64,000 bases of DNA from Oikopleura dioica (Eukaryota > Animalia > Chordata). Both the position numbers and the translations under genes were made by a program. Position 1 is the stretch's first letter. Each line of letters opens with the position of its first letter. The DNA lies in NCBI GenBank assembly GCA_907165135.1, contig OU015567.1:5766001-5830000 (forward strand). The letters are read 5' to 3'. Under the pieces are notes generated by a model. That model did not search any database and had not been told where the DNA came from. It saw only the letters and a program-made list of their open reading frames with translations. Shown piece after piece: positions 22,854 through 32,776 of this stretch.

Positions 22854-23908
22854 ACACAACTTGAAATTCCACGAACTTTTCACTTCAGAACATTCCAGCT
22901 GCATAAGAAGCTGAATAACAAAGAAAGGGAGGCGGCCAACTCCCCCTTTTTAGAAGCGAGACTCGTTGCCTAGGACGTGACAACTTGCAACTAGCAAAAA
23001 AAGGATGAAAAATGCGTTTGAAACGTCTCCCAGACGATCGAACTCACAATCAAAGTCATTTTTTTCATCAAAAAAAGAAGGAGAAATTTAAATTTCTGAT
23101 TCAGTAGACCAATTTATCCAACTTTTATAATCTCCAAAAAATTAATCAGGAAACATATGAAGACACTGAAAAAAATTGATTCTAATTAAAAATTTTTGAC
23201 TAACCGTATTTGCGTCGAAAACTCAGGCCGGTGTCACAACCTTACGCTCATAAAAAAGAAGAAAATAAAAAAGGTCGTTAATTCTGAGAATAAAAAGATT
23301 TCATCAGACTTGTTAAAAACGCTTCTACTCAGCGAACTTAATTGAAAAGAGAAAATGGAAAACGAAAACTTCGAACTTGAAAATCTTTTAATCACTGACC
23401 ATCCATCTCAACTAGAAAACGTAATAGATAAACTGATAGAAATGCTTCAAATCATTGCTTATCCATCTCAACTGGAAAGGGAGAAAGTTGAGTGTTGGCT
23501 GGAAGAATTTCTTCCGAAATTGAAGAGGACGACTTCGAGGACGCAGAAATGCCGACTTTTGGAATCGGTTGAGCGACTTGATTTTGAAGATGATAGCAAT
23601 GCTTATCGGTGGGAATTCGTAAAATTTGATAACGAAGGCCGAGGAACGACTTTCGACCGAAAGAATAAAAAACTTGAGGAGTTTGAGCAGACAGACTTCC
23701 AAAAACAAATTCTTCAAAATGAACTGTCTCTTCTTGATGAGAGAATCGGACGATGGGAGATCAAGGAAGAGTCTGGTGATTGGCAATCAGATGACGATTT
23801 GGAAAAGAAGGTGTTGTCGAGAGGGGGAGAAGCAATCGTGCTTGCTGAAAATTTTGAAGGTTTTGAGGCAGTTGTGCGAGTGCAGGTCTTTGATCCGTTT
23901 GTTTTTAC

Positions 23909-24179
23909 GGGTGGCGGGCGGCTACGTTCGAAATCGGTTTTTGGGCCAATTTTTCGAACGGCGTTCGAAATTTCCAAAAAATCTTTACCAAAATATGAGC
24001 TGAAACCATTGAAATCGTGTAAGTAAAGGAAGTTGGCATCATTATGGGAGAGTTTTCTTACAAATCAGGCGCGGAGCGCATATAAGCTCATTTTTATAAG
24101 CAGTTTCAGAAACTTTTCGAACGGCGTTCGAAAAATCTCGAACGGCGTTCGAAATTTCGAACGTAGCCGCCCTACACCC
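23909..24179. mobile_element. 271-bp MITE with 8-bp TSD in a kinase exon
   Basis: TIRs GGGTGGCGGGCGGCTACGTTCGAAAT / ATTTCGAACGTAGCCGCCCTACACCC; TSD GTTTTTAC at 23901-23908 and 24180-24187; absent from copy B at ~29480; internal CGAACGGCGTTCG repeats. Confidence 0.9.
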
Positions 24180-25549
24180 GTTTTTACGAGGGAATTTGAA
24201 GAGGCTGGATTTGTTTGCGAAATACATCTTTCGAGAGGTAGAAAAAGGGTTTGAAATTTATTTTAAAGGTTTTTTTAGATTTTAAACCGGCAGAAAGAGA
24301 ATCGAAAAAAGAAGAATCATCGGAGGGCGAGAATCAAATGCCATTCCATAAAAACGTGATCCACAACTTTGTGAATATTGAGTTGTTTCACGGGAAAGAC
24401 GAGAAAAGAAAAGACTGCTTGGGGTGGATTACGATCATGGAGAGAGGAGAGGCGAATTTGAGGACTTTGTTGAAGGAAGAAAAAATTGGTCTGGAAGAGA
24501 GAAGGGAAATTGCGAGTGGAATTTCGGATGGAGTTAATCATTTGTGGGGTCGTGGAATCATTCATTCCGATCTGAAATTAGAAAACGTCTTGCTTGTTGG
24601 TGGAACTCCGAAAATTATCGACTTCGGGCTCGTTAGGGAGACAACCGGACGAAAAGGCTACCGAAAAATGGGGTACGCCAGAAGGGGAGCAAAATACAAA
24701 AATCCTAGAGCTCTTGGTAAGTTTTTTTAAATTTTCAATTTTATACAAAGTTTGAAGCTGCTGGGACGCCAGGATTTACTTTACATGCTCAAATCGCGAA
24801 TGGAGCTGGTTATTTTGCTTTGAATCTTTATTTTTTTCTTTTCTGCGACTGGCAAACTGCGTGGACACTTCTTTACCAACCGATAGATGATAGTGAAAGA
24901 AACGAAATTGATGAAATTGTTGAAGTAAGAGCTTGATTTTTCTATTTTGTAATTTTTTTTAGGAGTGTGGAGCAACCTCAATCAAAAATTTGAATGTGCT
25001 CGATGAGAATTATTTGTCATCACTTTACAATCTCCCCTACGAAGTCACGAAAATAATTTCGCTGAAAAACGCGTCAACCGTATTTTGCCTGGACGACCCA
25101 AATTTGACCCAATCCTACAAGATGTCCAAAACGCAACAAAGTGCATTAACCAAGACATCAAGAATTTAACCAAAAACGTGTTCAACCAAAAAACTAGTCA
25201 ACTTTGCGTCCCGATTTCAGTCACTACTCTTCTCCGACACGCCATCAAGAAGGACCTTCCTGCTTTCGAGGATAAAGTCGGTTCTTTTACCTTTGAAAAA
25301 ATTCTTGCAACTTTGACGATGATCGTCTTTCCGCGAAGTTTGGCCGGACTAAATTTGAATCCGAACAACAAAGAAAAAGAAAAGCAAGAAAATGAGATCG
25401 AGATTCTTTTGGACCGACTTTGCAAAGAAACTTATCTCATGGAAAGTGGATGGCAAATCATCAGGGGAGTACGCAAAGAACACGAAGACGAATCTTGGTC
25501 AAAAGAATATCCAGTTAAATCAAGCTGTCACTTTCATACAGGTATTTAA

Positions 25550-25975
25550 CTCATTGCCAATGAGTCATTGGGCGCGAGCCTGGCCCTGTGCGTTGGCAAC
25601 CGCGTGGCGTTTTAAAACGCCACGTAGTTTTTCTCGATTTTGAAGCATTTCTTAATTGATTTCTTTTACTTTTAAAAAACTGATTGATAGAAAATCGTTT
25701 GGGCTATCCATTGATGCTAATTTTATCTTTTATCTCCGTCGGAAATAACTGTAAATAGCCACTGAAGATTGACCAAAAATCGTAGGCCACTTTTCAAATT
25801 TCCTGTCATCCAAAAAGTGGCCTTAAGTTAGGGTTTCACTGTAAGTTAAGGCCTTAAGTTAGGTATTCGTGTTGCCTGCAATCCAGCGGGTGAGCAGAAT
25901 CCGTCGAGAAATTTTAAGAGAAATGCCTCGCCAAAGTCCTCATGGCGTTTAAAAACGCCACGTGCGCCCAAAGGG
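25550..25975. mobile_element. piggyBac-like non-autonomous element (TTAA TSD) inside an intron
   Basis: TTAA at 25546-25549 and 25976-25979; right end ...CGCCCAAAGGG; subterminal inverted TGGCGTTTTAAAACGCCA motifs; absent from the homologous 40-nt intron 30855-30894; left TIR rearranged. Confidence 0.75.
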
Positions 25976-26987
25976 TTAATCATAAAGAAAACAGATCTAA
26001 CCCAAATTCAGTGACTCTCAACGAAAATTTCACTTTCATCCGTCCAGCAACAGTCACCGGCGCGTATTTAACCTCTGACGGCGATCTCCTCTTCCACCAA
26101 ATGACGCTCGACCGGGTCGAAAACGGCGACTACGTTCTCCAAAACTCAGATTTCAAAAATCACTCTCCTGGTACAATTTTTCAAAATTTATCAAACTCAA
26201 ACAAGCCACGTTCAGTTCTCCGCATTCCACGAAAAAGACCATACTACGCTTCTCCCGAATACATCTTCAATCTGGTCAACTCAACCGAGTGCAACGTTTA
26301 CGAAGACAACGAAATTAAACTCACACTCGTTAACGAGTACTTACAAAACATGGACGAAAACACCTGGTATCTTCATCCGGAGGCATACACAATCAAGCTT
26401 ATTCCAACGAAAAACCATATAAAAGAAACTGCTCTGATTCAAAAAACTTTTAATATCGACGAAGAAATTAACAGACCGAAAATTTTCATCGATGAGCTTC
26501 TCGCGGTTAGCAATATTTTTTGAAAAAGAAACAACTTTTCAATCATTCAAAAAGAACAATTTATATTTAGATAAATTTTTCTTTTTAGATGGGGTTTGAG
26601 AGGCAAGCGATTTTTGATGCCGTTACTACTTGTTATGGGAATTTTGAGAAAGCGAAGGAGTTTCTGCGAAAAACTGAGGGAGAACAACGCATCCATCTTG
26701 CACATAACACGACTTCAAGCACCGTTTTCGAAGAGGACGGAATAAACTACGAATTGGTGAACGAAAAGTTCGGAAACTTGGAGGAGAATGCGTGATATCT
26801 CCTTCCTATTGCTTACACCATCCAGTTCATCCCAGAATATACAACTTTATGAAAAACAAGAGCATTTTAAAATCAAGGAAAACGATTCTTCTGTCTTCCT
26901 TGATTTCAATTCTTTATTTTCAAAAATTGAGATATATTAAAAAAAAATAAAAACAGTGTTAATTGGGCAGAAAATGAATGCTTGAAA

Positions 26988-27434
26988 TTATTGTTCTTGA
27001 GAGACATTGATGAGCTCCAAAATTTGGGACGATTTGGTGGATAGCTCTGCTTCGTTGTTGTTTTGCGCGTACTCGTAGATTACGTCATCTAAAAGATTTA
27101 TTGAATAATGATTGTGAAGTCCGAGCTTACTCGATTTCTTGCGGCGAAGAGTCCAATCCGTCTCGTTGATCATGTTATTAACCGCGTAAAGGCAGCGGAT
27201 CTGCACCTCTTTTCCTCCTTGTTTTTCCTCGAGAAGCCGTTCAGTCCATTCCAGCGTAGTTTCCGATTTCTGGAGCAGCTCTTGGCCGAGGTTTTGTTCG
27301 CTCAAGCTGACGACCACTTTCATCAAACTCGCGCCGAAGAATTCGTCTCCATCTGTCAAACTCGATCGGGAAGCTGTGTCGAAGAGGGAGAGGTAAGCAG
27401 ACTCTTGCTCGGGACAGTAGTATCATCGGAAACA
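26988..27434 (-). pseudogene. 5'-truncated duplicate of the last exons of the ARMC10-like gene
   Basis: Nearly identical to 31435-31874 but cut at the duplication junction 27434/27435. Confidence 0.85.
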
Positions 27435-28079: not shown

Positions 28080-28823
28080 GGGATCCCCCCCTGTTTTTTC
28101 AAGTCTTTATCACGGGTCTCTTTATGGCATATTTAGATTCCCCGTGTTCTAAGGATCATTTTGATGTATCATACTACCCCTTTAGGAACATCTTTACCCG
28201 AAATTCTGGCCCTCGAAAGTCGTAAAAATGCATATAAGTTGTACTTAGCGTGAAAATCGCAATTTTTTCCACTTTTCAATGTCATCGAAAATAGACAAAT
28301 AAGGGGTCTATCGATAGCTAAGAATGCAACGAATAAGAATATGATGACCGCACTAGAATTTCTGGCCATAAATTGGCGGTAGAGAGCAAATTAAAGCCAG
28401 AAGAGGGCCAAAATAGCATCAAAAAAATCTTCTTAAGAAAATTTTTTTCTTACTTGGCCCAGGGCTGCTGAATTCGGAGCATTTGCGTTTACCCGCGATT
28501 TTTTGACGGAAGTCTTGGCCAAAAATGTTCTCTGTACTAGAGATTGTAGATTAGGCTCCATTCTATCTGAATCTTTTTTCATATCGAGTCTATCTAAGCC
28601 CAATTTGGCTGAATTTCGATTCAAAAATGGCCTAAAATGGCGATTTTTCGAAAAATTCGAACTTTGGCCCCTCCTAGTGGTAGGTTTGCCTTGAGCAAAA
28701 AACTTCTCTGTACTAGAGAATAGCGGATAGCACCTGGGCTATCCGTAGAGCTATTATACGCTCCAATTCATCAGCCCAATTCGGCTGAATTTCCAGTTGA
28801 AAATGGCCAAAACGGGGGATCCC
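28080..28823. mobile_element. 744-bp non-autonomous element with TTAA TSD and GG-starting termini (Kolobok-like)
   Basis: TIR GGGATCCCCC / GGGGGATCCC; TTAA at 28076-28079 and 28824-28827; empty site in unit A (~23238 CAACCTTACGCTC); internal ~120-bp direct repeat at ~28520 and ~28697. Confidence 0.85.
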
Positions 28824-28931
28824 TTAAGCTCGTAAAAAGAAGATAAAAAGGGTCGTTAATTCTGAGAATAAAAAGATTTCACCAGACTTGTTAAAAACGC
28901 TTCTACTCAGCGAACTTAATTAAAAGAGAAA

Positions 28932-31290
28932 ATGGAAAACGAAAATTTCGAACTTGAAAATCTTTTAATCACTGACCATCCATCTCAACTAGAAAACGTA
29001 ATAGATAAACTGATAGAAATGCTTCAAATCATTGCTTATCCATCTCAACTGGAAAGGGAGAAAGTTGAGTGTTGGCTGGAAGAATTTCTTCCGAAATTGA
29101 AGAGGACGACTTCGAGGACGCAGAAATGCCGACTTTTGGAATCCGTTGAGCGACTTGATTTTGAAAATGAAAGATATGCTGGTTCGTGGGAATTCGTAAA
29201 ATTTGATAAAGAAGGCTGTGGAACGATTTACAACAGAAAGAATAGAAAACTAGAGGAGTTTGAGCAGACAGAATTCCAAAAACTAATTCTTCAAAATGAT
29301 CCGTCTTTAACCGAAAAGACAATCGGACGATGGGAAATCAAGGAAGAGTCTGGTGATTGGCGATTAGATGACGATTTGGAAGAGAAGGTGCTTTCGCGAG
29401 GAGGGGAAGCAATTTTGATTGCTGGAAACTTCGAAGGTCTTGAGGCAGTTGTGCGAGTGCAGGTTTTTGATCCGTTTCTTTTTACGGAGGAATTTGAAGA
29501 GGAGAGATTTTCTTGCGAGGTACATCTTTCGAAAGGTAGAAACGAGTTTGAAATATTTTTTAAAGTTTTTTTTTTGAGAATTTGAACCAGCAAAAGAAAA
29601 ATCGGAGAACGAAGAATCATCCGAGTGCGAGAATGAAATGCCAGTCCATGAGAACATTATCTACAACTTTGTGAATATTGAGCTGTTTCACGCAAAAGAC
29701 GAGAAAAGAAAGGACTGCTTGGGCTGGATTACGATTATGGAAAAAGGAGAGGCGAACTTGAGGACTTTGTTGAAGGAAGAAAAAATTGATCTTGAAGAGA
29801 GAAGGAAGATTGCGAATGGAATTTTCGATGGGAATGAATATTTGAGAAGTCGGGGAGTTTTTCATTACGATCAGAAATTAGAAAACTTTGTGCTTGTTGG
29901 TGGAATTCCGAAAATAATTGACTTCGGGCTCGTTTGTGAAGAAAGCGGAAGAGAAGGCTACCGGAAAATGGGGTACGCCAGAAGAGGAGCAAAATACAAA
30001 CATGAAAGAGCTCTAGGTAAGTATTTAGAAAATTCCAATTCTTTACAAAATCTTGAAGCCGCTGGGACGCCAGGATTCACTTTTCATGCTCAGATCGCGA
30101 GTGGAGCTGGTTATTTTGCTTCTAATCTGTATTATTTTCTTTTCTGCGACTGGCAAACCGCGTGGACACTTTTGTACCAACCACTCGATGATGGTCAAAG
30201 AGAAGAAATTGATAAAATTGTTCAAGTAAGAACTTGATTTGTCGATTTTGTAATTTTTGTTTTTTTAGGATTGTGGAGCGACTTCAATCAAAAATTTGAA
30301 TGTGCTCGATGAGAATTATTTTTCATCACTTTTCTATCTCCCCTACGAAGTCACGAAAATAATCTCGCTGGAAAACGCGTCAACCGTATTTTGCCTTGAT
30401 GATCCAAACTTGACTCAATCCTGCAAAATGTCAAGTTTAAAACAAAACGCGTCAAAGTGCGTCAATCAAGACATGAAAAATTTGACGAAAAAAGTATTCG
30501 ACCAAAAAACGAGTCAACTTTGCGCCCCGATTTCGGTCACCACTCTTCTCCGTTACGCCATCAAAAGTGATCTCGCTTTCGAATACGAAGACAGTCTTTG
30601 TACCTTTGAAAAAATTCTGGCAACTTTGACGATGATCGTCTTTCCGCGAAGTTTGGCCGGCCTCAATTTGAATCCCAACAAAAAGGAAAAAGAAAAACAA
30701 GAAAATGAAATCGAGATTCTTTTGGAGCGGCTTTGCAAAGAAACTTATCTCATGAAAAGTGGGTGGGAAATCATCAGGGGAGTGCACAAAAGCTTCGAAG
30801 ACGAATTTTATGCAAAAATATCTCCAGTCAAATCTAGCTGTCACTTCCATACAGGCATTTAATCATAAAGAAAACAAATCATAACCCGAATTCAGTGACT
30901 CTAAACGAAAACTTCACCTTTACCCGTCCAGCAACAGTCACCGGCGCGTATTTAACGTCTGACGGCGATCTCTTCTTCCACCAAATGACGCTCGATCGAG
31001 TCGAAAACGGCGAGTACGTTCTCCAAAACAGCGATTACAAAGACCACTCTCCTGGTAAAATATTTCTCTCAAACTCAAACAAGCCTCGTTTAGTTCTCCG
31101 CATTCCACTAAAAAGTCCATACTACGCTTCTCCCGAGTACATCTTCAGTCTGGTCAACCAAAGCGAGTGCAACGTTTACGAAGACGACGAAATCAAACTC
31201 ACACTCGTCAACAAATTTTCACAAAACATGGACGAAAACACCTGGTATCTTCTTCCTACTGCTTACACCATCCAGCTCATTCCTGAATAA
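28932..31290 (+). CDS. Kinase-like domain fused to a papain-like cysteine peptidase domain, copy B (open frame)
   Basis: Five exons in frame (introns ~29537-29579, 30017-30058, 30226-30269, GC-AG 30855-30894). Kinase motifs HYDQKLEN, KIIDFG, GTPG; peptidase motifs VFDQKTSQLC (Cys codon 30521), H at 30979, YVLQNS (Asn codon 31027). Confidence 0.85.
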
Positions 31291-31434
31291 ACAACTTTGT
31301 GAAACACAAGAGCATTTTAAAGTCAAGGAAAACGATTCTTCGGTCTTCCTTGATTTCAATATTAATTTTCAAAAATAGAGATATATTAAAAAAATAGAAA
31401 ACAGAGATAAATGGGCAGAAAATGATGTTTGAAA

Positions 31435-32776
31435 TTATTGTTCTTGAGAAAAGTTGATGAGCTCCAAAATCTGGGAAGATTTGGTGGAAAGCTCTCGCTC
31501 TGCTTCGTTGTTGTTTTGCGCGTACTCGTAGATTACGTCCTCTGAAAGAGTCGCTGAAACATGAAAAAGAACGTGGCGCTTACTTGATTTCTTGCGGCGA
31601 AGATTCCAATCAGTCTCGTTGATCATGTTGTTGACCGCGTAGAGGCAGCGGATCTGCACCTCTTTTCCTCCTTGTTTTTCCTCGAGAAGCCGTTCAGTCC
31701 ATCCAAGCGTCGTTTCCGATTTCTGGAGCAGCTCTTGGCCGAGGTTTTGTTCGCTCAAGCTGACGACCACTTTCATCAAACTGGCGCCGAAGAATTCGTC
31801 TCCATCTGTCAAACTCGATCGGGAAGCTGTGTCGAAGAGGGAGAGGTAAGCAGACTCTTGCTCGGGACAGTAGTTTCGCGAGAAATTGGCGATACAGTCG
31901 GTCACGATTTCGAGTGTTCCGCTTGACTTGGACGACTGGATCAGCTGGCTGTTTGCAGCTTGGATCAAGACGGGCACGAACTCGATTCCCTGAGAAACAA
32001 TCTTTAGACCTTTTGTTCGGGGAGAAAACTTACAGAGTTTTTGCCCTTTTCGCTCAAAGAGATTTTCTCAATAATCTGGCAAGCAACGAGAATGACTCTT
32101 TCGCTGGCGTGGGTGATGCACTGCAGGACCAAACCGATTTTATTGTGGTCCGCGATTTCGAGCTAAAGAAAACTTGAATTTTGAAGCTTCGAAATTGACT
32201 TACCAGCTGTTCTTCGATTCGGGCGCGGAAGAGGATTTCCTCAAGACACGAGATGATTTCCTGGAATTTCTCGGCGATCAAAACTTGTTCCAGCAAATTG
32301 AAGAGTCCGTCCAAAGATGATTTTTCCACGACGTCGTCTTTACAGTCCAAAGTCGATGGCGCTGCCAAGTCGCAAAAATCGAGGTCCTCTTCGACGCTTT
32401 TTGTGGAACTGCTCGTGGCGGAATCAAAGCTATCTTCGTCGTAGGAGTCTTGATCATCTGGGACGACTTCAGTGTCGATTTCGCTCGTTGGGTAGGTTCT
32501 GGTGACGCTTGTTCTCCGGATCGTATTTTCTTCTGGACAGAATTTGAACTCTTCTTTCTGATTTGGCTCAGTCTTGTCCAGCGTTTCTAAGAGCTCTGAA
32601 TATTCATTTAGCGAGTAATTTCGACCACTGAACTTACCTTTGCTCATTTTCTTTCTCAGTTCCTTGTCCCTTTTCTTTCTTTGGTGTTCATCAAAGAAGA
32701 GCTTGGCGACGAGGCCGGCCACTCCAATCGTGGCAAGCGAGAAGAAAACAGTGATGACTTTGCGGATTGAGGGCAT
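31435..32776 (-). CDS. ARMC10: ARMC10/ARMCX-like protein (N-terminal TM, acidic linker, armadillo-like repeats), paralog 1
   Basis: MPSIRKVITVFFSLATIGVAGLVAKLFF TM segment; LMKVVVSLSEQNLGQELL and QIRCLYAVNNMINE resemble the recalled ARMC10 C-terminal region. Confidence 0.6.

Follow-up and report, generated by a model that had tools for sequence, protein, structure and literature searches.

Papain carries its catalytic residues as Gln19 and Cys25 and as His159 and Asn175, and the C39 peptidases have the same Gln-Cys and His-Asn spacing. The kinase fold and the papain fold are each well known, and in IRE1 and RNase L kinase or pseudokinase domains switch on the effectors to which they are fused. 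A kinase fold and a papain fold joined in one chain were, as an earlier note on the present locus had supposed, not found described in the literature that we searched, nor was the protein family treated below; absence from that literature is not proof of novelty. Here we analyse a 64,000-nucleotide stretch of the Oikopleura dioica genome (assembly GCA_907165135.1, contig OU015567.1, positions 5,766,001 to 5,830,000 of the forward strand; hereafter the window), in which the earlier note, made from the letters alone, had pointed to a kinase-like domain followed by a papain-like protease. We read the region 28932-31290 on the plus strand, from its open reading frames (ORFs), splice sites and comparison with paralogs, as a five-exon gene with a product of 729 residues, referred to as copy B to distinguish it from an upstream paralog, copy A. 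The product comprises a protein-kinase-like domain (residues ~140-415) and a C-terminal domain (residues ~470-729) predicted to adopt a papain fold. We consider it probable that the intact gene encodes an active thiol peptidase controlled in cis by the kinase-like module to which it is fused.

The C-terminal domain and its candidate catalytic residues

Two stretches of the C-terminal domain carry the residues in question. Within VFDQKTSQLCAPIS, Gln482 (codon 30503-30505) stands six residues N-terminal of Cys488 (codon 30521-30523), and within FHQMTLDRVENGEYVLQNS, Asn643 (codon 31027-31029) follows His627 (codon 30979-30981) by 16 residues. The codon positions (30503-30523 and 30979-31029) thus bear out both of the spacings given in the earlier note, and the four residues recur, as it had claimed, in copy A (about 23355-26837), which has VFNQKTSQLCVPIS and FHQMTLDRVENGDYVLQNS.

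The fold was predicted with AlphaFold2 for residues 61-374 of P0079, a paralog 53% identical to the window protein, from an alignment of 82 rows that includes the window exons. The model (mean predicted local distance difference test score, pLDDT, of 78, mostly >85 from residue 88 onward) has two lobes, with helices across residues 90-175 and strands across residues 188-311. Exhaustive comparison of this model with 48,161 PDB representatives by VIA-align returned only clan CA cysteine peptidases among the top 50 matches, led by Der f 1 (Z 9.6 over 152 residues, 3.4 Å), Der p 1 (Z 9.5) and cathepsin B (Z 9.4), with xylellain (Z 9.3) and the C39 domain of PCAT1 (Z 9.0) close behind; ComA, staphopain, IdeS, UfSP, ATG4, ZUFSP, streptopain, bleomycin hydrolase and the coronavirus PLpro filled lower ranks. 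For a predicted structure, the uniformity of this list is the strong point of the fold evidence. A shape search of the ESM Atlas returned Peptidase_C1 and C39 clusters. The papain-like character proposed in the earlier note was therefore upheld at the level of the model.

In the P0079 model the catalytic Cys is residue 90, the first of a helix spanning residues 90-105, and the Gln lies in a loop six residues earlier; His223 falls within a strand (residues 220-231) and the Asn comes directly after the next one (residues 234-238). Judged on sequence and predicted secondary structure, the Gln, Cys, His and Asn set occupies the canonical papain positions.

Conservation was counted over 201 aligned rows of the domain, each position being scored on the rows that cover it. 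The Gln is kept in 171 of 176 rows (97%; Phe in two, Glu in two and His in one), the Cys in 171 of 177 (97%; Gly in one and Ser in the remainder) and the His in 48 of 52 (92%), three of the four exceptions being gene models that extend into intron sequence. The fourth position holds Asn or Asp in 41 of 51 rows (80%). The residues are thus retained across paralogs, and this pattern, as far as alignment and model allow it to be judged, lies beyond chance. Two further motifs, PRS...NP and GW, are more constant than the catalytic residues themselves; in exon 4 of copy B they read PRSLAGLNLNP and GW and are nearly invariant in the family. Between copies A and B, the ratio of nonsynonymous to synonymous substitution rates is 0.23 and 0.28 across the protease exons and 0.51 across exon 1.

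No Pfam family was matched by the C-terminal domain in searches with the window exons and 82 family sequences: Peptidase_C1 did not appear at E ≤ 1, and Peptidase_C39 was not matched either, the likeness to C39 being one of fold only. When the family profile was compared with PDB sequences, the C-terminal domain gave a chance match alone (E 0.15). Taken with the model, the domain is, by its predicted structure, a cysteine peptidase domain of the papain fold (clan CA), so divergent that no Pfam family covers it.

Gene structure, domain fusion and family

The earlier note had treated the locus as a continuous reading frame, and on this point it does not stand: four long ORFs in three frames are separated by short introns (Table 1), one of them in frame and one with a GC-AG boundary. 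Homologs align with exon 1 along its entire length. Intron 2 was overlooked when the ORFs were read because it is both in frame and open. Its removal is supported by copy A, where the equivalent GTAAGT...AG segment is 41 nt long and has to be excised to keep the frame, and by annotated paralogs, which read ...AL-x-AGTPGF without the 14 additional residues. Downstream of 30841 there is no GT donor for the last intron, which must use the GC at 30855 because this is the only junction that yields ...SSCHFHTVTLNENF..., in agreement with the paralog pattern C-x-F-x-x-V-x-LNENF. The exon junctions are consistent with the annotated proteins of O. dioica and with homologs whose coding sequence lacks the introns in question; in one of these, P0074 from a metagenome contig, the whole protease domain lies in a single uninterrupted exon. 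A four-exon model of 738 residues, in which the in-frame intron was missed and a GT within a Cys codon was taken as the last donor, conflicts with copy A and with the paralogs and was rejected.

Both domains are found in one chain elsewhere. A match to Pkinase and the papain-fold domain occur together in annotated O. dioica proteins, and a JGI contig has an uninterrupted ORF of 436 residues that extends from the catalytic loop of the kinase part through the end of the protease domain. In copy B, the two parts are separated by an intron of 43 nt, whose removal preserves the frame. The possibility of two separate genes was rejected in view of these single uninterrupted ORFs and annotated proteins covering both domains, and the kinase-protease fusion is, as far as sequence can tell, one protein.

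The kinase-like domain is recognised by Pfam in the piece encoded by exon 2 (Pkinase, 42.3 bits with a cut-off of 31.7, E 8e-11), and the family profile matched 896 distinct kinase sequences in the PDB, the best being TTK (2e-9), over the hinge-to-DFG stretch only. An AlphaFold2 model of residues 1-452 of another paralog, P0124 (pLDDT 71), gave at least 500 Foldseek matches, all protein kinases among the matches listed. The HYDQKLEN and IDFG motifs are present in the window protein, as are the other peptides quoted in the earlier note (AVVRVQ, SRGGEA and the stretches around the catalytic residues). Of 27 family rows, 21 cover the HxD Asp and 20 of these keep it, and the Lys and Asn of KxxN and the DFG are retained in 21 of 21 each, in line with the retention of these motifs noted earlier.

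The N-lobe departs from this picture. Arg stands at the expected position of the beta3 Lys in 13 of 13 paralogs, so the atypical residue first seen in the window protein (Arg175, codon 29454-29456, exon 1) is a family trait; its equivalence to the Lys of VAIK comes from spacing and predicted structure, the phmmer and profile alignments to PDB kinases spanning the hinge-to-DFG stretch alone. The P0124 model places this Arg in the third strand (beta3), after a Gly-rich turn, and between this strand and beta4 it predicts no alphaC helix. The domain thus has the fold, Pfam score, catalytic loop and DFG of the kinase superfamily and lacks the pair formed by the beta3 Lys and the alphaC Glu. On alignment and model, it is a real but atypical kinase-like domain.

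A search with exon 4 through 1.84 billion representatives returned 66 clusters (50% identity), and when the clusters formed at 90% identity were searched with a profile, 208 proteins were obtained, many of them fragments. All named members are from O. dioica (CBY accessions, labelled as unnamed or uncharacterised); the others belong to ENA and JGI assemblies of marine origin. The best O. dioica relatives share 47-54% identity with the window protein, and the paralogs are ~50% identical to one another. A divergent branch (27% identity) was found on contigs from Tara Oceans and other marine metagenomes with the same domain order, a Pkinase-matching exon lying just upstream. Its His box reads MHAVIIYGFDENSYKIKDSQG, of the papain-like form HAV..G.D......KDS. 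The branch (L001, an ENA contig of 3934 nt, ERZ21837715; L002; L003) was also seen to have short introns, a glycine loop of the form GVGGEG and the motif HCDIKPSN. Its source is possibly another larvacean.

The window protein has an acidic N-terminus and, as the earlier note had stated, neither a signal peptide nor a prodomain. We observed that two O. dioica paralogs, P0124 and P0078, begin with a hydrophobic helix (residues 1-20, MLE(F/L)SILA..ATCIAGMI) that is absent from the window gene. With such a helix, part of the family may be membrane-anchored or secreted.

Table 1. Exons and introns of the fusion gene (copy B) and features of its upstream paralog (copy A), in window positions.
Feature	Positions	Strand	Description
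Exon 1, copy B	28932..29535	+	N-terminal region (residues 1-~135) and kinase N-lobe beta1-beta3, including SRGGEA and AVVRVQ
Intron 1	29536..29578	+	43 nt, GT-AG; frame regained between exons 1 and 2
Exon 2	29579..30016	+	Acidic linker, kinase beta4-beta5, hinge, HYDQKLEN (29863-29886), DFG (29920-29928), start of activation segment
Intron 2	30017..30058	+	42 nt, GT-AG; within the kinase activation loop
Exon 3	30059..30225	+	GTPGF, helix alphaF (FCDWQTAW), end of the kinase-like domain; from paralog alignment and AlphaFold2 secondary structure
Intron 3	30226..30268	+	43 nt, GT-AG; frame change between ...DKIVQ and DCGATS...
Exon 4	30269..30854	+	Low-confidence linker (residues 416-~470), helical lobe of the predicted papain fold, Gln482, Cys488
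Intron 4	30855..30895	+	41 nt, GC-AG (non-canonical donor)
Exon 5	30896..31290 (stop codon included)	+	Beta lobe of the predicted papain fold, His627, Asn643
Copy A, upstream paralog	23355..26795	+	Same domain order plus UBA-like tail; disrupted as assembled; from tblastn and blastn comparisons
MITE-like insertion, exon 1 of copy A	23910..24180		271 nt, terminal inverted repeats, 9-nt flanking duplication GTTTTTACG
UBA-like tail of copy A	26491..26666	+	Split by an 83-nt GT-AG intron (26506-26588); spliced ...IDELLA / MGFERQAIFDAVTTCYGNFEKAKEFL

The disrupted upstream paralog

Copies A and B derive from a tandem duplication, in which 28822-31877 (B) matches 23240-27424 (A) with 84-91% identity at the DNA level. 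The account of copy A in the earlier note needs one correction, for the copy is disrupted as assembled. A 10-nt deletion after 25126 in its protease exon (relative to 30433-30442 in copy B) shifts the frame, and its exon 1 is interrupted by an element resembling a miniature inverted-repeat transposable element (MITE), with terminal inverted repeats (~65 nt, imperfect) and flanked on either side by the 9-nt direct repeat; no second copy of this element was found within the window. As assembled and as read from its sequence, copy A is unable to make the full fusion, and it is either a young pseudogene or a local misassembly. Two side observations can be added: excision of 23908-24189 with GG-AG boundaries would, speculatively, regain the frame minus one codon, and the last intron holds a 421-nt insertion (25555-25975) that is not in copy B and occurs nowhere else in the window.

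The stop codon of copy A has been lost, and its reading runs on into the UBA-like module. The UBA announced in the earlier note can be seen at the level of sequence as a UBA-like module, but its Pfam score lies below the gathering cut-off and the copy that bears it is frameshifted. The UBA profile matched the second piece of the tail at E 5.7e-4 with 20.1 bits (cut-off 22.4), over profile positions 12-37 of 37; the first helix of the module is encoded just ahead of the 83-nt intron and so falls outside the scored piece. A remnant copy of the 3' end of the gene lies after this tail. It was further observed, from the match of 26719-27424 to 31169-31877, that the duplication includes the 3' part of a minus-strand gene at 31435-31977, and a second, partial copy of this neighbour is present behind copy A because the duplication extends over that part.

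Proposed function and comparison with known systems

According to the reading that we favour, the C-terminal domain would be an active thiol peptidase or isopeptidase, in which the pair of Cys488 and His627 would do the chemistry, with Gln482 forming the oxyanion hole and Asn643 keeping the His in orientation. Control would be exerted in cis by the kinase-like module to which the protease is fused, whether through the binding of a nucleotide, through phosphorylation or through dimerisation, and the protein would work in the cytosol. The proposal for the module follows, by analogy, the logic of IRE1 and RNase L. The tandem duplication, the ~50% identity among paralogs and the frequent broken copies would suit a function that evolves fast, perhaps one in defence.

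Several observations weigh against this reading. The fold was predicted on a paralog with 53% identity rather than on the window protein, and Z scores of 8-10 lie just moderately over the background of 7-8 stated for the tool. Foldseek found no match to the P0079 model in the PDB at E ≤ 1e-3, the weak matches being enriched in C39, staphopain, AvrPphB and Josephin-type proteases. No peptidase family was matched at the sequence level in the Pfam searches of the window exons and 82 family sequences; Peptidase_C1_2 reached E 0.0036 in 3 of the 82 paralog sequences, far under the cut-off and not traceable to particular members. The Asn position is variable, ~20% of the rows having Thr, Ser, Ile, Met or Gly there, and 5 paralogs have Ser instead of the Cys. 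Finally, the Lys-Glu pair is missing from the kinase-like domain, which therefore possibly does not transfer phosphate.

The alternatives differ in what the papain fold would be for. It might, along the lines of the earlier note, serve as a deubiquitinase or an isopeptidase specific for ubiquitin-like (UBL) proteins, acting on conjugates of the ubiquitin type. The UBA-like module at the end of copy A and the want of a signal peptide and prodomain would suit such a role, and C39, UfSP, ATG4 and ZUFSP, all of which cleave after tails of the Gly-Gly type, are among the fold matches (Z 6.4-9.0). The UBL-specific families nevertheless rank under the C1 peptidases in the fold search, with UfSP at Z 7.6, ATG4 at 7.4 and ZUFSP at 6.4-6.6, all under C1 and C39. 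None of the deubiquitinase and UBL-protease families considered (UCH, USP, OTU, Josephin, MINDY, ZUFSP, UfSP and ATG4) was matched by Pfam in the window exons and family sequences, and none was best structurally. Moreover, a simple pattern scan found the UBA-like motif in no other of the ~200 family sequences, and the one copy that bears it is frameshifted, with a UBA score under the Pfam cut-off. We therefore regard a ubiquitin-directed activity as possible but doubtful. Some other thiol chemistry (that of a transglutaminase, deamidase, acyltransferase or amidase) appears unlikely: the papain fold is known to host such enzymes, and among the matches are PeiR, a pseudomurein endoisopeptidase (Z 8.5), a CdiA-CT toxin domain (7.5) and an entry named 'P210 CD lyase' (7.8), but the Gln-Cys and His-Asn/Asp spacing is that of papain, and true peptidases are both the best and the most numerous matches.

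It is very unlikely, in our estimation, that both domains are inert and that the protein is a scaffold made of a pseudokinase and a pseudoprotease. Such a scaffold would agree with the replacement of the beta3 Lys by Arg in all paralogs and the missing prediction of an alphaC helix, with the Ser, or Phe and Ser, found at the Gln and Cys positions of some paralogs, and with the many broken copies in the family. However, the Cys, His and Gln, together with the Asp, Lys, Asn and DFG of the kinase-like domain, are kept in 92-100% of paralogs at ~50% identity, a retention that would be difficult to account for if neither catalysis nor ligand binding required it.

Beyond the favoured reading of a peptidase under the control of the kinase-like module, we tentatively suggest, with rather low confidence, that the family could act as a single-chain switch, in which the kinase-fold module, having lost its Lys-Glu pair and kept the catalytic loop, would sense a signal such as a nucleotide, a phosphorylation or a pathogen product and turn on the fused papain-fold protease, as part of an expanded and fast-evolving system of innate defence or cell fate peculiar to larvaceans. 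The size of the family (>200 clusters when grouped at 90% identity, with many fragments among them), together with the ~50% identity among paralogs, the tandem duplicates and the frequent dead copies, points to a role that is lineage-specific and unstudied. The family could offer a compact natural system in which to study the control of a protease by a kinase-fold module. Annotation based on ORFs or on Pfam misses such Oikopleura genes, which are hidden by tiny and in part non-canonical introns.

Among the closest proteins on record, O. dioica sequences such as CBY13560.1, CBY31701.1 and CBY31442.1 (47-54% identical) are true members of the family with the same domain order. Their annotation goes no further than 'unnamed protein product', 'Protein kinase domain-containing protein' or 'Uncharacterized protein', and a large number of the models are truncated or run into introns. 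IRE1 and RNase L resemble the fusion in architectural logic only, a kinase-fold module being followed immediately by an effector enzyme within a single cytosolic chain. The IRE1 kinase domain is among the Foldseek matches of the P0124 model, but the effector of these proteins is a KEN RNase domain and that of the fusion a predicted papain-fold peptidase, and homology was found for the kinase fold only.

For the peptidase domain itself, the C39 domains of PCAT1 and ComA (Z 8.0-9.0, with 121-130 of ~140-150 residues aligned) are alike in having a tetrad of the Gln/Cys/His/Asp type, in lacking a prodomain and in working fused to another module. They are, in contrast to the O. dioica domain, bacterial and N-terminal to ABC transporters, with a much shorter helical lobe, and the sequence-level match to Peptidase_C39 is wanting. 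The members of the C1 papain family (Der f 1, cathepsin B and xylellain, Z 9.3-9.6 with 152-161 residues aligned) share with the window protein the spacing of six residues from Gln to Cys and of 16 from His to Asn, and the distance from Cys to His along the chain is 139 residues here and 134 in papain. The O. dioica domain differs from them in its failure to match Peptidase_C1, in an identity of 8-10% in structural alignments and in the absence of the signal peptide and I29 prodomain of secreted C1 members; unlike theirs, it is fused behind a kinase-like domain and carries invariant motifs of its own, PRSLAGLNLNP and GW.

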